Virus record (IMG/VR): IMGVR_UViG_3300026885_000082
Location: 1 to 9,760 of that record
Reading direction: 5' to 3' (one strand)
DNA length: 9,760 bases
This document shows, piece after piece, positions 1,111 through 7,750 of this stretch (within the stretch, counting starts at the first letter, position 1; the number at the start of each line of letters is the position of its first letter). The notes under the pieces were generated by a model. The model worked only from the letters and a program-made list of their open reading frames with translations, made no database searches and was not told the DNA's origin. A program made the translations under genes and the position numbers.

Positions 1111-1181
1111 AAGAAATAGTTAGAAAAGAGAGCTAAAAAATAAAAAGCCGGAAATTATTATCTAGCATTGGGTACCCCTAT

Positions 1182-1339
1182 TGCACATAAGCAAGGAGAA
1201 ACGTCAATAATTGACGACCTGCACATAAGCAACAAATAAGATCAATAAGTTATATTTTGCACGCAAGCAAGAATTCATCTTAATAATCATTTCGCTGCAC
1301 ATAAGCAACAAGATGCTTTAATAATTGTAAACATGCACA
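1182..1339 (+). repeat. Dual-repeat array with 38-bp period (TIGR-like candidate guide-RNA array): 4 full units plus a terminal partial repeat
   Basis: TGCACATAAGCAA at 1182, 1220, 1258 (variant TGCACGCAAGCAA) and 1296, partial TGCACA at 1334. Second repeat TYAATAA at 1204, 1242, 1280, 1318. All eight intervening segments are exactly 9 nt and all differ. Strand is inferred. Confidence 0.85.
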
Positions 1340-1344
1340 ATAGT

Positions 1345-1362
1345 GTTGGGGAAATCTCCAAC
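1345..1362. terminator. Hairpin between the array and the end of the convergent acyltransferase gene
   Basis: GTTGGGG-AAAT-CTCCAAC, 7-bp stem with one G.U pair. Confidence 0.4.
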
Positions 1363-1366
1363 TAAG

Positions 1367-2299
1367 CTACACTTCTATTACCCTTTTTGTTATTTCCTTT
1401 CTTCTCAGCGGAAACTCCGTAGCAATTGCAGTTAGGATGCCGTAAAGTATTCCACTTGCTCCAGAAAGTTCCTGAAAGAGTAAAGTCCACAGATAAACTC
1501 CGTAACTCACCTCTCCAAGGAAGACCGTTACACGACTAAGTACCTTAGGCGGATTTAAGATAAGAAGGGCAAAAACGGGTAACGCCAAGTTGTAAATCAG
1601 GAATCGCGTGAAGAACTCATAAGTTATCTCGTCACGTGTATTTAATGCTATGTATAGTACAAGCAGTAATCCTAATATAATATAATGTATATTGTTCGCT
1701 CTATAGCCCTTCTTCTTCAAAAGGTAAACGATTATCCCCCACCCGTACGCCCCTAACCAAAAGGGGGGCATGAAGTAAAGTAAGTGAAACTCATTGTAGG
1801 GGAGAAGAACTATAAACGCACTATATATTAACGTTGTAATGATTAGAAATGTTGCGATACGAAACTTCCATTTATCGGGAAGCTTGTGTAACATTGGTAT
1901 GATAAGATACATCCATTCTTCCAGCTGAAGAGACCAGAAGAGATATTGGAAGGAAAACGGTGTAAGAACATAGGAAACGAATGCAAAATGGAGTATCAAA
2001 TCGTAATATGTCACTCTCAGGTTGAACATGTATCTGTCGACTAAGAATACTACGATGACAGCAAGGAAATAAAGTGGCCATATCCTCTTCACTCTTCTCT
2101 TGAAATAACGAGAGAGTGAGGGGTTTTCATCGAGTCTGCTCATAAGGAGAAAAATCGATAACTCGAAGAAGAGAGGCACACCCAACCAACCAGGGCGAAA
2201 AAACGCAAGAGGGATTAACTGAAGAGTCCATAAATGATATAAAGCGACGGAAAAAGATGCGAAAAAACGTAATTGAGCTATTCGTGGATCATACTTCAT
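1367..2299 (-). CDS. Acyltransferase family 3 (OafA/YrhL-like) integral membrane O-acyltransferase
   Basis: Motifs LRFFASFSVALYH, GWLGVPLFFELS, RRVKRIWPLY, WSLQLEEWMY and LGEVSYGVYLW; multiple TM segments. ATGA overlap with the upstream gene at 2296-2299. Confidence 0.9.
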   Translation of the reverse strand: MKYDPRIAQLRFFASFSVALYHLWTLQLIPLAFFRPGWLGVPLFFELSIFLLMSRLDENPSLSRYFKRRVKRIWPLYFLAVIVVFLVDRYMFNLRVTYYDLILHFAFVSYVLTPFSFQYLFWSLQLEEWMYLIIPMLHKLPDKWKFRIATFLIITTLIYSAFIVLLPYNEFHLLYFMPPFWLGAYGWGIIVYLLKKKGYRANNIHYIILGLLLVLYIALNTRDEITYEFFTRFLIYNLALPVFALLILNPPKVLSRVTVFLGEVSYGVYLWTLLFQELSGASGILYGILTAIATEFPLRRKEITKRVIEV

Positions 2300-3021
2300 G
2301 TTGATCGCCTGGCATATATTAAGCCGATCTTCTTCTTGTTTCCTTTAATCGTAACGTTAAACCCTCTAAGTAGATCTGCAAGATGTTGAACGCCGTTATG
2401 ATATTCTACGATAATCGTATGATATCTATTAATCAGTGAAGCAGTACTAAAGAAACCATATTCACACCCTTCGCAATCGACTTTAAGTACAGATCCAGAA
2501 GGAATATTATATTTGAGTGTTATAACATCTAAATTATTTGAAAGTCCACACTCGCAACTAATTGGCTCAATAACGTCTTTTAGATTATTTTCTCCTATGT
2601 TCTTTTCTAAGTAAGTCGTGTTGACATCAAACGCATAGACTTTCTTTGCACCGTTTAACGCAAAATAAATTGGCGAATCTCCTATTCCCGCACCGACATC
2701 AACTACTGTCCTTCCTTTTACATCAACGTCGTATATACCCTCTCTGAAGATTTCCCCGAAAGCCACAAAATCATTTATATCGAAATAGAACTTTAGCACC
2801 CTGTCCATGTACCTAAATAGTATAAATCTATCAGTGACAAAAATGATGTCAAGGTCACGTAACGTTGTAAAGAAATAGGCGTGCCTTTTCGACTTTATTT
2901 CTACTTCCAATCCATTCCTTAATTTCGCTGTAAAAGGGAACCTGTTTAATGCCGTTCTGAACATTACATTTAATGGATTATCATATGCAGACATATACGC
3001 CTTAAGCATTTTGAGATTCAT
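2296..3021 (-). CDS. FkbM-family SAM-dependent methyltransferase (241 aa; start corrected to ATG 3021)
   Basis: VVDVGAGIGDS SAM-binding motif, KKVYAFD and LKVDCEGCEY. The track's extra 96 N-terminal codons are the antisense of the IS left end and tnpB. SD-like AGGTGTGA on the minus strand at 3033-3026. Confidence 0.88.
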   Translation of the reverse strand: MNLKMLKAYMSAYDNPLNVMFRTALNRFPFTAKLRNGLEVEIKSKRHAYFFTTLRDLDIIFVTDRFILFRYMDRVLKFYFDINDFVAFGEIFREGIYDVDVKGRTVVDVGAGIGDSPIYFALNGAKKVYAFDVNTTYLEKNIGENNLKDVIEPISCECGLSNNLDVITLKYNIPSGSVLKVDCEGCEYGFFSTASLINRYHTIIVEYHNGVQHLADLLRGFNVTIKGNKKKIGLIYARRST

Positions 3022-3058
3022 CTTTTCACACCTGAGATCCAGTCCGTTAGGACGGGGA

Positions 3059-3073
3059 GCTAAGTATAAATAT
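3059..3073 (+). promoter_or_regulatory. Putative TATA box for tnpB
   Basis: GCTAAGTATAAATAT just inside the left-end hairpin, about 25-30 nt upstream of SD-like GGGGATG (3096-3102). Confidence 0.5.
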
Positions 3074-3106
3074 GAATTAAAATAAAAAAAAGATTGGGGA
3101 TGTTCC

Positions 3107-4243
3107 CTGAAAGCAGAAGTTAAAGTAGCAGTACAGGGGAAGATTCTGAACCCTAACAAAGAGAAGAGACACAAACTGAACGTCGTTCTGGAGAAGTACC
3201 TAAAAGCTGTGAAATTCTTCGCTTCCTTTAAGATTAAGGATAAGAAACTTCTCCAACAGAAAGCGTACAAGGAGGCGAGAAGAAGGTTCGGTCTATCCTC
3301 CACTCTCACACAGACTGCTAGGGATAAAGCAGTAGAACTGGTTAAGGCTAATGAGGGAAGAGAGTTTCACATTCATAAAGTATCCATACGAGTGAACTAC
3401 CGTGCTTTCAAGCTCGTGAGGAGGGACACTAAATTAACACCTTATTGGTTATATCTTCAGCTGGACGGTGATGGTGTATGGTATCCAGTACAATTTGGAG
3501 AAAGACAAAGACAGATGATAGATGACGCCCTCTCTGATAACAGTGAATGGTATTTGCAACAAGTTGAACTCGTAAAGAGAGATGGAGAATGGTACGTTTA
3601 TTTCACTCTCGAAAAGCCCTTCAAGAATTATGAGCCGAAAACACCTATAGGAATAGATTTGGGTGAAAAGAACTTCGCTACAGTAATAGCACTAGTTAAC
3701 GGTAAACCGACAAAGGGTACCTTCTTCAAAGGGTCGAAAATCAAGGAAGTCAGGCACAAGTACTTCAATATCAGGAAGAAACTACAGGAAAAGAAAAGGT
3801 TGAACGTGATTAAGAGGCTGAGAGGTAAAGAGAGAAGGATCGCAAACCATGAGCTTCACGTTATCTCCAAGAAGATTGTGGAATACGCTAAACAGTTCCC
3901 TTCTCCTGTGATAGTGATGGAGAAGCTCACAGGTATTAGAGAGAACTTCAAGAAGGGTAAGAAACTCAATAGGAGGTTTCACTCCTTACCCTTCAGGAAG
4001 CTACAGAAGATGGTGGAGTACAAGGCTAAGATACAAGGAATCAAGGTGGTATACATAGACCCTAAGAATACGTCAAAAACATGCCACAGGTGTGGATATG
4101 TTACCCACGTTGAAGGAAGGGAATATCACTGTCCTAAGTGCGGTCTCAAGTACAACCGTGACCTGAACGCATCTATTAACATAGCCCGTGCCTTAATGAG
4201 AGGTACGGGTCGGGGGTACGTAAACACCCCGAAGGGGAGATGA
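3107..4243 (+). CDS. tnpB: RNA-guided endonuclease TnpB
   Basis: RuvC-I GIDLG, RuvC-II VMEKL, Zn ribbon CHRC...CPKC, RuvC-III NRDLNAS. The frame is open upstream of the track's 3209 start (LKAEVKVAVQGKILNPNKEKRHKL...), which resembles a TnpB N-terminus. The start at CTG 3107 is inferred. Confidence 0.93.
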   Translation: MKAEVKVAVQGKILNPNKEKRHKLNVVLEKYLKAVKFFASFKIKDKKLLQQKAYKEARRRFGLSSTLTQTARDKAVELVKANEGREFHIHKVSIRVNYRAFKLVRRDTKLTPYWLYLQLDGDGVWYPVQFGERQRQMIDDALSDNSEWYLQQVELVKRDGEWYVYFTLEKPFKNYEPKTPIGIDLGEKNFATVIALVNGKPTKGTFFKGSKIKEVRHKYFNIRKKLQEKKRLNVIKRLRGKERRIANHELHVISKKIVEYAKQFPSPVIVMEKLTGIRENFKKGKKLNRRFHSLPFRKLQKMVEYKAKIQGIKVVYIDPKNTSKTCHRCGYVTHVEGREYHCPKCGLKYNRDLNASINIARALMRGTGRGYVNTPKGR

Positions 4244-4325
4244 AGGTGCGTCGTGAAGACCACTGGAAACCCCAAAGCCCCGTCCGTGAGGGCGGGGTAG
4301 CTTACACCGATTCATCCCAAATCAC
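4150..4325 (+). ncRNA. Predicted TnpB omega/reRNA: scaffold to 4305, guide about 4306-4325
   Basis: TnpB guide RNAs are known to span the tnpB 3' end, the right end and flanking DNA. GC-rich stems are visible in 4190-4297. The 5' end is a guess. Confidence 0.6.
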
Positions 4326-4739
4326 TTTGTAATCCTTTAACACACTTTTTGCAGAACTTATCAACGAATTATTTACAATGTTCAACACTTCTCTCTCCTG
4401 TTCATCTATCCTTATGTATTTACTTTTTATTTTATTCATCAATGATTTACTCTCCTTGAGCGCGCTTATCAATTTCTCCTTAGCATTCCAAACGTTAAAG
4501 AGCGGGATTGTATAATCGTTAAAGTCGGAGAGCAGTATTTCGAGTGCCTTGGTTACGTATTTGACAAATTTGTCATCAACGTCTTTACCATACCTCAGAT
4601 GGAGGTCAAGTAACTCTCCCTTCAGGAAGTCCCATATTTGGTCGTCATTACGCTCACCGCTGAGCTTTGCGGTCAGTAACTGTATCAGTATCTCTTCGAC
4701 GTAACTACGTCTGTGTTGTTGTTGCTGTTGTAGACTCAA
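4302..4739 (-). CDS. Hypothetical helical protein with N-terminal poly-Q
   Basis: TTG start with SD-like GGTGAG at 4750-4745; overlaps the upstream gene; the stop codon lies in the IS right end. Confidence 0.75.
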   Translation of the reverse strand: MSLQQQQQHRRSYVEEILIQLLTAKLSGERNDDQIWDFLKGELLDLHLRYGKDVDDKFVKYVTKALEILLSDFNDYTIPLFNVWNAKEKLISALKESKSLMNKIKSKYIRIDEQEREVLNIVNNSLISSAKSVLKDYKVIWDESV

Positions 4740-6698: not shown

Positions 6699-7017
6699 TT
6701 TGCATCAGCCTCTTTAACTCATCTATGTTTACTGGTAAATTAAAAAATATTCTACCATAGATGTAAATCGCCGGTGGGTAGTTCTCTCTTTCTGCGCAAT
6801 AGTTTAGCAACTTCGACACGCACATCTCCAACGTGTTATACTTCTTTTCACATATTTCCACTATCTCCTCATCATCCTCGATAAAGTACTTCAACTTTCT
6901 TGCTTGGACACCGTAGTAGCTGTAAAACCCGTTCTTCTTGTCACTAAAATAATATACTTTGCTCTTTGCTTTTCTGATAATATCGTTCACGAATTTCTCG
7001 CACATCTCACGACCCAA
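6685..7017 (-). CDS. Hypothetical protein, about 110 aa
   Basis: Overlaps neighbours on the same strand; start may be the internal ATG (MCEKF). Confidence 0.7.
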   Translation of the reverse strand: MGREMCEKFVNDIIRKAKSKVYYFSDKKNGFYSYYGVQARKLKYFIEDDEEIVEICEKKYNTLEMCVSKLLNYCAERENYPPAIYIYGRIFFNLPVNIDELKRLMQSVRQ

Positions 7018-7750
7018 GTACTACACCTCTCACATAACCGTTGTGAACGTAAATGTACAAGACGTTATCGGAAACTATGTAGGAAATATTATATCCGATC
7101 ACGGTCACGTTTCCGAAAACTGGCTGGTAAAGTATCACAGTACCATTCACGACGATACCGTTATTATAGGAAAGTTTGGTTCCCGGAGTGAGCTCGATAT
7201 ACCAACCCCACGGTAATGCCTCGTTATACTTCCCGCTGTAATACAGTACGGAAAAGTCTGGGTTGATGATAAGAGGCCTAGTTATGTTAGGTGTTACGTA
7301 AACTGGGGAGTTTACAAAATCATACCCTGAGTAGACCTGGACGAAGATCCTAGTAAAAGGCGGTATGAAGTAAAGGGGTGATGGCGCAGAGATATTGATC
7401 AGACGCCATGAGTGAGGCGGGATAACAGTCAGTGGACTATTGTAAGGTGCGTAAGCCATGATCTGACTTGAAACGACCCACCTCTTCTCACTACCGAGCA
7501 TGTAAAGGAGGAAAATAGGGTAAACCGGAGAGTTTCCGTGATTGGTAACGTTTAAGCACACTACGTCCCAGTATCCTACATCGCCGACATCGTAGACTTT
7601 CACGATGTAAACTGACAGCGGTAACGTCGGTTTCAACAATAAAGAGATTGTAAGTATTTCAAGCACGATGATACTAACCAAAAATATAATAGCAGTGGGG
7701 GTGTGGGGGTACCCCCCACTAGGGGGTACTCCCCTAAATGTCCAGTTCAT
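7007..7750 (-). CDS. Membrane-anchored, beta-rich exported (glyco)protein; start uncertain
   Basis: N-terminal TM helix, V/Y/P/N-rich sequence, several sequons (NVT, NIS, NIT, NGT). The first 20 or so codons run through a G/C hairpin cluster. Confidence 0.75.
   Translation of the reverse strand: MNWTFRGVPPSGGYPHTPTAIIFLVSIIVLEILTISLLLKPTLPLSVYIVKVYDVGDVGYWDVVCLNVTNHGNSPVYPIFLLYMLGSEKRWVVSSQIMAYAPYNSPLTVIPPHSWRLINISAPSPLYFIPPFTRIFVQVYSGYDFVNSPVYVTPNITRPLIINPDFSVLYYSGKYNEALPWGWYIELTPGTKLSYNNGIVVNGTVILYQPVFGNVTVIGYNISYIVSDNVLYIYVHNGYVRGVVLGS

Follow-up and report, generated by a model that had tools for sequence, protein, structure and literature searches.

The window, by which we mean the whole stretch of 9,760 nt analysed here, is JGI contig Ga0208662_100869 from metagenome 3300026885 (IMG/VR record IMGVR_UViG_3300026885_000082) and, as judged by its matches to sequenced viruses, is a metagenomic fragment (9.76 kb) from a large spindle virus of the Sulfolobales whose relatives include YNP1, YNP2, and ATSV. 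About 40% of the window aligns with YNP1 and YNP2, both Sulfolobales viruses, with a nucleotide identity of roughly 80%, and the acyltransferase region matches SMV1 and ATV-2, which are Bicaudaviridae-like large spindle viruses, at ~81% nucleotide identity. Homologues of the ORFs at 739–1110 and 4302–4739 are neighbours in YNP1 (contig L002, 1422–1511) and YNP2 (contig L001, 1491–1553), and window positions 1111–4301 therefore constitute a variable insert, which contains a short repeat array, an acyltransferase gene, a methyltransferase gene, and a TnpB element. The flanking genes are present at the syntenic site of YNP1 and YNP2 and the array is absent there, as are the acyltransferase and methyltransferase genes, with which it makes up a variable cassette. 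The TnpB element is a tnpB-only, IS200/IS605-type element of 1,284 bp (3022–4305) with GC-rich subterminal hairpins at both ends, inserted exactly between the start codon of the methyltransferase gene and the stop codon of ORF 4302–4739. Its tnpB gene (3209–4243) has Cas12f1-like_TNB (E = 2.5e-26) and OrfB_IS605 matches, and positions 4244–4305 are presumed to be the omega-RNA region of the element. The 337-aa ORF at 2296–3309 (minus strand) is over-extended, its upstream part running into the IS element; according to the JGI gene call and the homologue in the related contig L015, the real methyltransferase gene spans 2296–3021 (241 aa).

Four units of exactly 38 bp each can be read directly at 1182–1333 (plus strand). 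Each is composed of a 13-nt edge repeat (TGCACAYAAGCAA), a 9-nt spacer A, a 7-nt loop repeat (TYAATAA), and a 9-nt spacer B (13 + 9 + 7 + 9 = 38 nt). Unit 1 (1182–1219) consists of edge repeat TGCACATAAGCAA (1182–1194), GGAGAAACG, loop repeat TCAATAA (1204–1210), and TTGACGACC, and the array thus starts with a full edge repeat that is not 5′-truncated. Unit 2 (1220–1257) has the same edge and loop repeats (TGCACATAAGCAA, TCAATAA) around spacer A CAAATAAGA and is closed by spacer B GTTATATTT. Unit 3 (1258–1295) has the variant edge repeat TGCACGCAAGCAA, spacer A GAATTCATC, loop repeat TTAATAA, and spacer B TCATTTCGC, and unit 4 (1296–1333) has TGCACATAAGCAA, spacer A CAAGATGCT, TTAATAA, and spacer B TTGTAAACA. 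A 3′-truncated terminal edge repeat, TGCACAATAG, follows at 1334–1343 (plus strand). A repeat-finding program returned four copies with spacings of 38, 38, and 38 bp, and the 13-mer occurs four times in the window with at most two mismatches, as compared to 0.17 expected occurrences and at least four in 0 of 200 shuffled sequences. TRF did not detect the array at 1182–1333, because identity between whole units is only 64–77%. The array fills the gap between ORF 739–1110 and the acyltransferase ORF 1367–2299 (both minus strand). Between its end and the stop codon (1367–1369) of the convergent acyltransferase gene lies the hairpin GTTGGGG-AAAT-CTCCAAC (1345–1362, plus strand, stem 1345–1351/1356–1362), which has a 7-bp stem including one G·U pair (−10.3 kcal/mol), is weak and not significant alone (z = −0.76), and is a possible bidirectional terminator. 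A previous sequence-only reading had described the 38-bp period, the four units of 13 + 9 + 7 + 9 nt, eight 9-mers each preceded by YAA and followed by T, the location in an intergenic gap, and a partial repeat with a hairpin at the end; all of this was confirmed, down to every one of the quoted 9-mers.

Archaeal box C/D sRNAs carry a box C and a box D that form k-turns, and have guides of 10–12 nt. Such an identity was rejected for the array, given that neither TGATGA nor CTGA (box C RUGAUGA, box D CUGA) occurs within 1182–1343 and that Rfam yielded no match in the array region, even at E-values up to 1. A CRISPR array would have a single repeat of about 23–50 nt, spacers of similar length, and cas genes or a repeat that fits the host Cas proteins. 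Identity as a CRISPR array was rejected on account of the repeats of 13 and 7 nt and the spacers of 9 nt, and no Cas domains were found in the window ORFs scanned. A sub-threshold match to the RAGATH-1 hammerhead in a coding region at 7299–7366 (plus strand; 25.4 bits versus a gathering threshold of 56.3, E = 0.93) is most likely due to chance.

Twelve further viral contigs with these repeats, YNP1 among them, were recovered by an exact-pattern scan of IMG/VR, and ATSV was found separately. Long arrays of 8–46 units with a period of 38 nt, occasionally 39 nt, are present in 11 of these 12 contigs. The YNP1 array is located at 39652–40860, and the 24 units of ATSV correspond to the annotated repeat_region 9232–10146 (KU645528.1). 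Across arrays, 149 of the 159 exact 38-nt units are unique and ten are duplicates. A sequence logo over the 149 unique units contains information only at positions 1–13 and 23–29, with both 9-nt blocks close to random. The edge repeat starts with UG and ends with CAA, the loop repeat starts with UC and ends with UAA, and UGC and GCA of the edge repeat can pair. The arrays are non-coding, because stop codons occur in every frame on both strands and 38 is not a multiple of 3. According to the same logo, spacer A is A-rich at positions 2–4 (56–64% A), and spacer B shows hardly any bias apart from the rarity of G at its last position (3%); equivalent spacers would not be expected to differ in base composition in this way.

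Every long array for which DNA was available starts 1–35 bp past the stop codon of a conserved gene for a ~343-aa protein on the same strand (e.g., ALG97163.1 of YNP1, ATSV_B343, and ORFs in contigs L005–L014 and L016). ATSV_B343 and the Tas homologue encoded by L011 share 79% identity, and 71 close homologues (at least 59% identity) of the 343-aa protein were found in hot-spring metagenomes, where they are annotated as zinc-ribbon proteins or unannotated. A narrow family profile matches PDB entry 9mty, a TIGR-TasR/tigRNA/DNA complex, at E = 0.0038 in the helix-hairpin-helix 'GIGP' region. A HMMER search of 1.84 billion representative proteins recovered 310 distant relatives of the family, several of which match Pfam Transposase_20 (the IS110 C-terminal domain) and one of which, P0081 (E = 2.4e-19 to the viral profile), matches TasR at 3.5e-15. 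An extended profile that includes the distant relatives matches TasR (1.8e-44), TasH (6e-24), IS621 (4.5e-5), and ISCro4 (1.3e-4). An AlphaFold (AF2) model of the 343-aa protein from a 53-sequence alignment reached a pLDDT of 93.9 and a pTM of 0.87, as compared to a pLDDT of 65 for an earlier model from nine close sequences, and the top 20 PDB matches of the model in Foldseek were all TasR, TasH, IS621, or ISCro4 (probability at least 0.98, TM 0.38–0.65). As judged by profile matches and modelled structure, the ~343-aa protein of the relatives is a Tas homologue with a Nop-type fold.

Pfam searches with the 343-aa protein gave no match to RuvC, HNH, or DEDD_Tnp and only weak zinc-ribbon matches. 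The N-terminus of the model comprises a long helix, a CHCC zinc ribbon (residues 32–77), and a second helix, and the Nop domain is interrupted by another zinc ribbon. The viral Tas was classed as TasA-like because no nuclease domain was recognisable by Pfam or in the fold model, and it appears to be nuclease-free in so far as the model can tell. Three residues that do not vary within the family, Y280, Y288, and H294, are located in or beside the non-helical stretch that follows the Nop domain (the C-terminal loop); a Tyr/His processing dyad on the C-terminal loop is said to be conserved in dual-repeat Tas systems. YNP2 has neither tas nor array, and the TIGR-Tas module is therefore accessory in this virus group. 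Two of the deposited loci are irregular. In YNP1 (L017, KP282679.1, 38605–40860) N/X positions occur in both tas and the array, and the spacings of the array vary (31, 41, 54, 71–75, and 94–96 bp), which suggests assembly errors or decay. Contig L013 (IMGVR_UViG_3300005860_000274, 7192 bp) has the same tas and the same eight units at both ends in inverted orientation (23–328 on the minus strand, 6865–7170 on the plus strand), probably as a palindromic assembly artefact.

The recurrence of these repeats in arrays of up to 46 units, 149 of 159 of them unique, and the attachment of the long arrays to the Tas-homologue gene in a single orientation bear on whether the repeats could instead be double-stranded DNA sites, i.e. 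iterons or operators that control the divergent promoter of ORF 739–1110 or serve replication or partition. Iterons do not have two hypervariable inserts of a fixed 9-nt length per unit, and the repeat logic matches that of tigRNAs. We therefore regard DNA-binding sites as very improbable, even though the array is intergenic and adjoins a promoter region, and the methods text of Faure et al. 2025 (PMC12045711) covers an association of TIGR with parB-like genes.

With the same repeats found in arrays of 8–46 units downstream of a Tas homologue in related viruses, the proposal of the sequence-only reading that this is a TIGR-type array in an archaeal mobile element is well founded. Its further suggestion of a candidate new RNA-guided system has to be given up, since the effector family is recognisable and this array type was already annotated in ATSV and cited in 2025. 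Hochstein et al. reportedly described the ATSV repeat region in 2016. Faure et al. 2025 (PMC12045711), citing the 2016 ATSV work, refer to the ATSV array as a TIGR-like array of an archaeal virus, and state that TIGR loci occur in archaeal viruses; in those of their supplements that were searched, the ATSV and YNP loci are not listed. The ATSV-type array is thus already known, its first record dating from 2016 and its citation as TIGR-like from 2025. TIGR arrays can be recognised from raw sequence.

None of the window ORFs matches the 343-aa Tas family, and the 9.76 kb contain no Tas ORF. An exact-protein search with one window ORF recovered this contig and no longer assembly. The closest relative of the window, the 17.5-kb contig L011, encodes proteins with 83–96% amino acid identity to the window ORFs and has, in this order when read in the window's orientation, tas, a 20-unit array, two small ORFs, homologues of window ORFs 104–373, 395–703, and 739–1110, a 5-unit mini-array, and the acyltransferase gene. 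Window position 1 aligns to L011 position 2650, with ~90% identity right up to the contig end, and this position is ~820 bp from the end of the L011 main array, with the stop codon of tas ~1.7 kb away. Truncation of the contig is therefore the best explanation for the missing tas, and the tas of the window virus most likely lies just beyond the left end of the contig, as extrapolated from this one close relative. Contigs often end at repeats, and another contig with this tas family ends 72 bp past tas, inside the array. The earlier statement that no Tas gene is visible was accurate for the window, but it describes an effect of where the contig ends; likewise, of the effector options then offered, 'encoded elsewhere' stands, and an effector too divergent to recognise or borrowed from elsewhere does not, as Tas is recognisable and adjoins the arrays in relatives. 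That an effector is missing from a short metagenomic contig does not by itself speak for a new system.

Wherever DNA is available, repeats of this type come with a recognisable Tas, in L011 at a place just off the contig end of the window, and the array region has neither box C/D motifs nor an Rfam match. An orphan array of a new system, with an effector that is too divergent, borrowed from the host (e.g., Nop5/fibrillarin/L7Ae), supplied by a co-infecting virus, or identical with the TnpB encoded at 3209–4243, is thus extremely improbable in our view. It would account for the lack of Tas in the window and could draw on the TnpB 1.9 kb away, and YNP2 shows that related viruses can lack tas, which makes a co-infecting virus's Tas acting in trans conceivable. 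TnpB was rejected as the array effector: it resides in the 1,284-bp IS insertion, for which L015 has an empty site while still carrying the mini-array.

The mini-array locus is shared by the window, L011, and L015, the last with a mini-array only, and comprises four, five, and four units, respectively. It is preceded in all three by a nearly identical leader of ~70 nt (window 1111–1181, plus strand, from the start codon of ORF 739–1110 to the first repeat), and the units differ. An A/T box at 1135–1147 fits the TATA box of the leaderless minus-strand ORF 739–1110, and a BRE/TATA-like box, GGAAATTATTAT, at ~1150–1161, ~25 nt before the first edge repeat, fits a candidate array promoter. Both assignments are by analogy with Sulfolobales promoter architecture, a sigma-70 promoter scan not being applicable to archaea. 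Unit 1 is private to the window, and L011 has two different units and L015 none at this leader-proximal position. Unit 2 belongs to the core: L011 and L015 have the same two spacers, and in L015 the entire 38-mer is identical. Unit 3, likewise a core unit, is present in L011 and L015 with point differences, and its edge-repeat variant TGCACGCAAGCAA also occurs in the long arrays of L006 and L014. Unit 4 is private to the window, and L011 and L015 have a unit with TCGTAATCT there. The three mini-arrays thus have the core units CAAATAAGA/GTTATATTT and GAATTCATC/TCATTTCGC in common and differ at both the leader-proximal and the distal end; together with the 149 of 159 unique units across arrays, this agrees with a turnover of spacers between conserved repeats, which the sequence-only reading had suggested looking for among relatives. 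One unit of the L011 mini-array, AGGAATTTC/TTTTACCTT, duplicates the last unit of the L011 main array (AGGAATTTC/TTTACCTTA), and units therefore move between arrays. In L011, mini-array, main array, and tas all run in one direction.

The DNA flanking the mini-array has diverged to 84–87% nucleotide identity among the window, L011, and L015, and the repeats are nevertheless intact and spaced at exactly 38 bp in all three contigs. This is difficult to reconcile with a decaying by-product, i.e. a main-array fragment that was copied by repeat recombination and is neither expressed nor used. Such an origin would be in keeping with the small number of four units, with the exchange that the duplicated L011 unit demonstrates, with the absence of the array from the syntenic site in YNP1 and YNP2, and with a terminal hairpin that is not significant. 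We consider it improbable, in view of the conserved leader with its TATA-like box at the right distance, the gain and loss of units at both ends while the core pair is kept, and the truncated terminal repeat, as in bona fide TIGR arrays. The array is very probably a secondary 'satellite' TIGR array of the TIGR-Tas system of ATSV/YNP1-like Sulfolobales large spindle viruses.

CRISPR arrays have one repeat of 24–37 nt, spacers of ~30–40 nt, and host Cas proteins, whereas the system described here combines a pair of short repeats and split spacers of 9 nt with a Tas that the virus itself encodes. The virus-borne mini-CRISPR arrays of Sulfolobales viruses are also short guide arrays, with a plausible role in inter-virus conflict. 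The closest known counterpart is ATSV (KU645528.1), which has the same edge repeat (TGCACAYAAGCAA), loop repeat (TCAATAA), 9 + 9-nt spacers, and 38-bp period, and, like the window virus, belongs to the large tailed spindle viruses of Sulfolobales. With its 24 units, the ATSV array directly adjoins tas, whereas the window array has four units at a second site with its own conserved leader, several genes away from the position of tas in relatives.

TIGR arrays have alternating edge and loop repeats of 8–12 nt and 9-nt spacers, are located next to genes for Nop-domain Tas proteins, are processed to 36-nt tigRNAs, and end with a truncated edge repeat and a terminator (Faure et al. 2025, PMC12045711). 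The viral arrays share the edge/loop alternation and the two 9-nt spacers with the dual-repeat TIGR-Tas systems TaTasR (PDB 9mty), SpTasH, and FpTasA (PMC12045711), and the long viral arrays also share with them the co-oriented array adjoining a Nop-domain gene. The truncated terminal edge repeat is present in the window at 1334–1343, and the fold predicted for the viral Tas, like its profiles, matches TasR and TasH. The TaTIGR unit (Faure 2025 supplement) consists of edge repeat UGCGAGCCA, spacer A, loop repeat UGAAACCCA, and spacer B, with 9-nt spacers, and the frame of its edge repeat, UGC-GA-GCCA, is shared with UGC-ACAYAA-GCAA here. The viral repeats differ in length (13 and 7 nt versus 8–12 nt in published TIGR arrays), as does the unit (38 versus 36 nt). 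In TasR arrays, box D (UG) opens and box C (CCA) closes both repeats. The viral repeats have the same layout (U-x...YAA) with other letters: box C is CAA/UAA, and the loop repeat starts with UC instead of UG. TasR has RuvC and TasH has HNH, whereas neither was found in the viral Tas, which has two zinc-ribbon insertions, and the viral main arrays reach 46 units versus the usual 5–15 in TIGR-Tas systems.

TasA and dead TasR are RNA-guided transcriptional repressors (Xu et al. 2026, bioRxiv 10.64898/2026.09.09.750476) and are Nop-domain proteins without an active nuclease, as predicted for the viral Tas. MbTasA and BlTasA (bioRxiv 10.64898/2026.09.09.750476) are bacterial, the latter from a locus with a stem-loop array, whereas the viral system is of the dual-repeat type and from a hyperthermophilic archaeal virus, with a function deduced by comparison only.

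For a satellite array of this system, we propose the following mode of action. The array would be transcribed rightwards from its own conserved leader, in what we take to be the orientation of tas and the main array. The viral 343-aa Tas would bind the precursor RNA through its Nop-type domain, at the edge repeat UGCACAYAAGCAA and the loop repeat UCAAUAA; homology and synteny place this Tas beyond the left end of the contig, next to the main array. Cleavage inside the edge repeats would release four guides of ~38 nt, by analogy with the 36-nt tigRNAs. Each guide would read double-stranded DNA, its two spacers, A and B, recognising opposite strands, if the mode of TaTasR can be transferred by homology. 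The outcome would be RNA-guided DNA binding or repression, as for TasA, and this is likelier than cleavage because the viral Tas is without RuvC and HNH.

The corresponding target has the form 5′-[spacer A][reverse complement of spacer B]-3′, a geometry that was confirmed for TaTasR from published oligonucleotides. Bipartite 18-mer targets of this kind had been put forward in the sequence-only reading, and none were found above chance: matches of 187 unique spacer pairs to 251 kb of related viral DNA (both topologies, up to three mismatches, gaps of 0–2) were no commoner than those of shuffled pairings. The four targets of the window, for units 1–4, had 0, 19, 4, and 19 exact matches in IMG/VR, which are unrelated in that they have no tblastx similarity to the Sulfolobales virus set and unrelated GC contents. 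A genome scan with the AT-rich 18-mer of unit 2 gave, among the matches listed, chance matches in unrelated taxa, and no self-targets with up to three mismatches were found. Natural targets of TIGR systems are hard to find (Faure et al. 2025, PMC12045711).

There is a small chance that the mini-array is more specialised, being either an independently promoted satellite that acts in trans, or part of a travelling cassette with the acyltransferase and methyltransferase genes that could be used by the Tas of a co-infecting virus. As such a satellite, its core guides (units 2 and 3) would direct the nuclease-less Tas to a fixed regulatory target of the host or a rival element, and the end units would turn over. 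If the mini-array acts in trans in this way or travels with this cassette, it would be the first example from an archaeal virus of TIGR guides at a distance from tas.

The Sulfolobales large spindle viruses harbour a coherent and widespread TIGR-Tas clade with 38-nt units and non-canonical box motifs. Of interest beyond the known ATSV-type system is the separate conserved mini-array with its own leader, several genes from tas, in some genomes. Further interest lies in the non-canonical repeat motifs and in the apparently nuclease-free, zinc-ribbon-bearing Tas of hyperthermophilic archaeal viruses. Archaeal-virus Tas proteins are natural candidates for thermostable RNA-guided DNA binders, and these systems are suited to studying what TIGR does for viruses.

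Two minor observations concern the arrays of the relatives. The second repeat region of ATSV (annotated at 11703–11992; L018 9506–9795), recorded as a 'possible viral CRISPR locus', has a different repeat (…GGAAGAACTAAAAG…) that is unrelated to the TIGR repeats. A recurrent, conserved unit with a degenerate loop repeat, GGGTTGGTT-TTCAACA-AGAAYCCTA, is often the last in the array; it is located at L005 13295 and 12609, L008 4046, L016 1516, and L018 (ATSV) 7910, with variants at L011 3833, L012 2137 and 1885, and L014 6738. By eye, pairing is possible between the 5′ portion of spacer A and the 3′ portion of spacer B in this unit, and changes between contigs look compensatory (GGGTT/AACCC, GGAT/ATCC, AGGC/GCCT). 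This unit may be a structural or terminator unit and not a guide.
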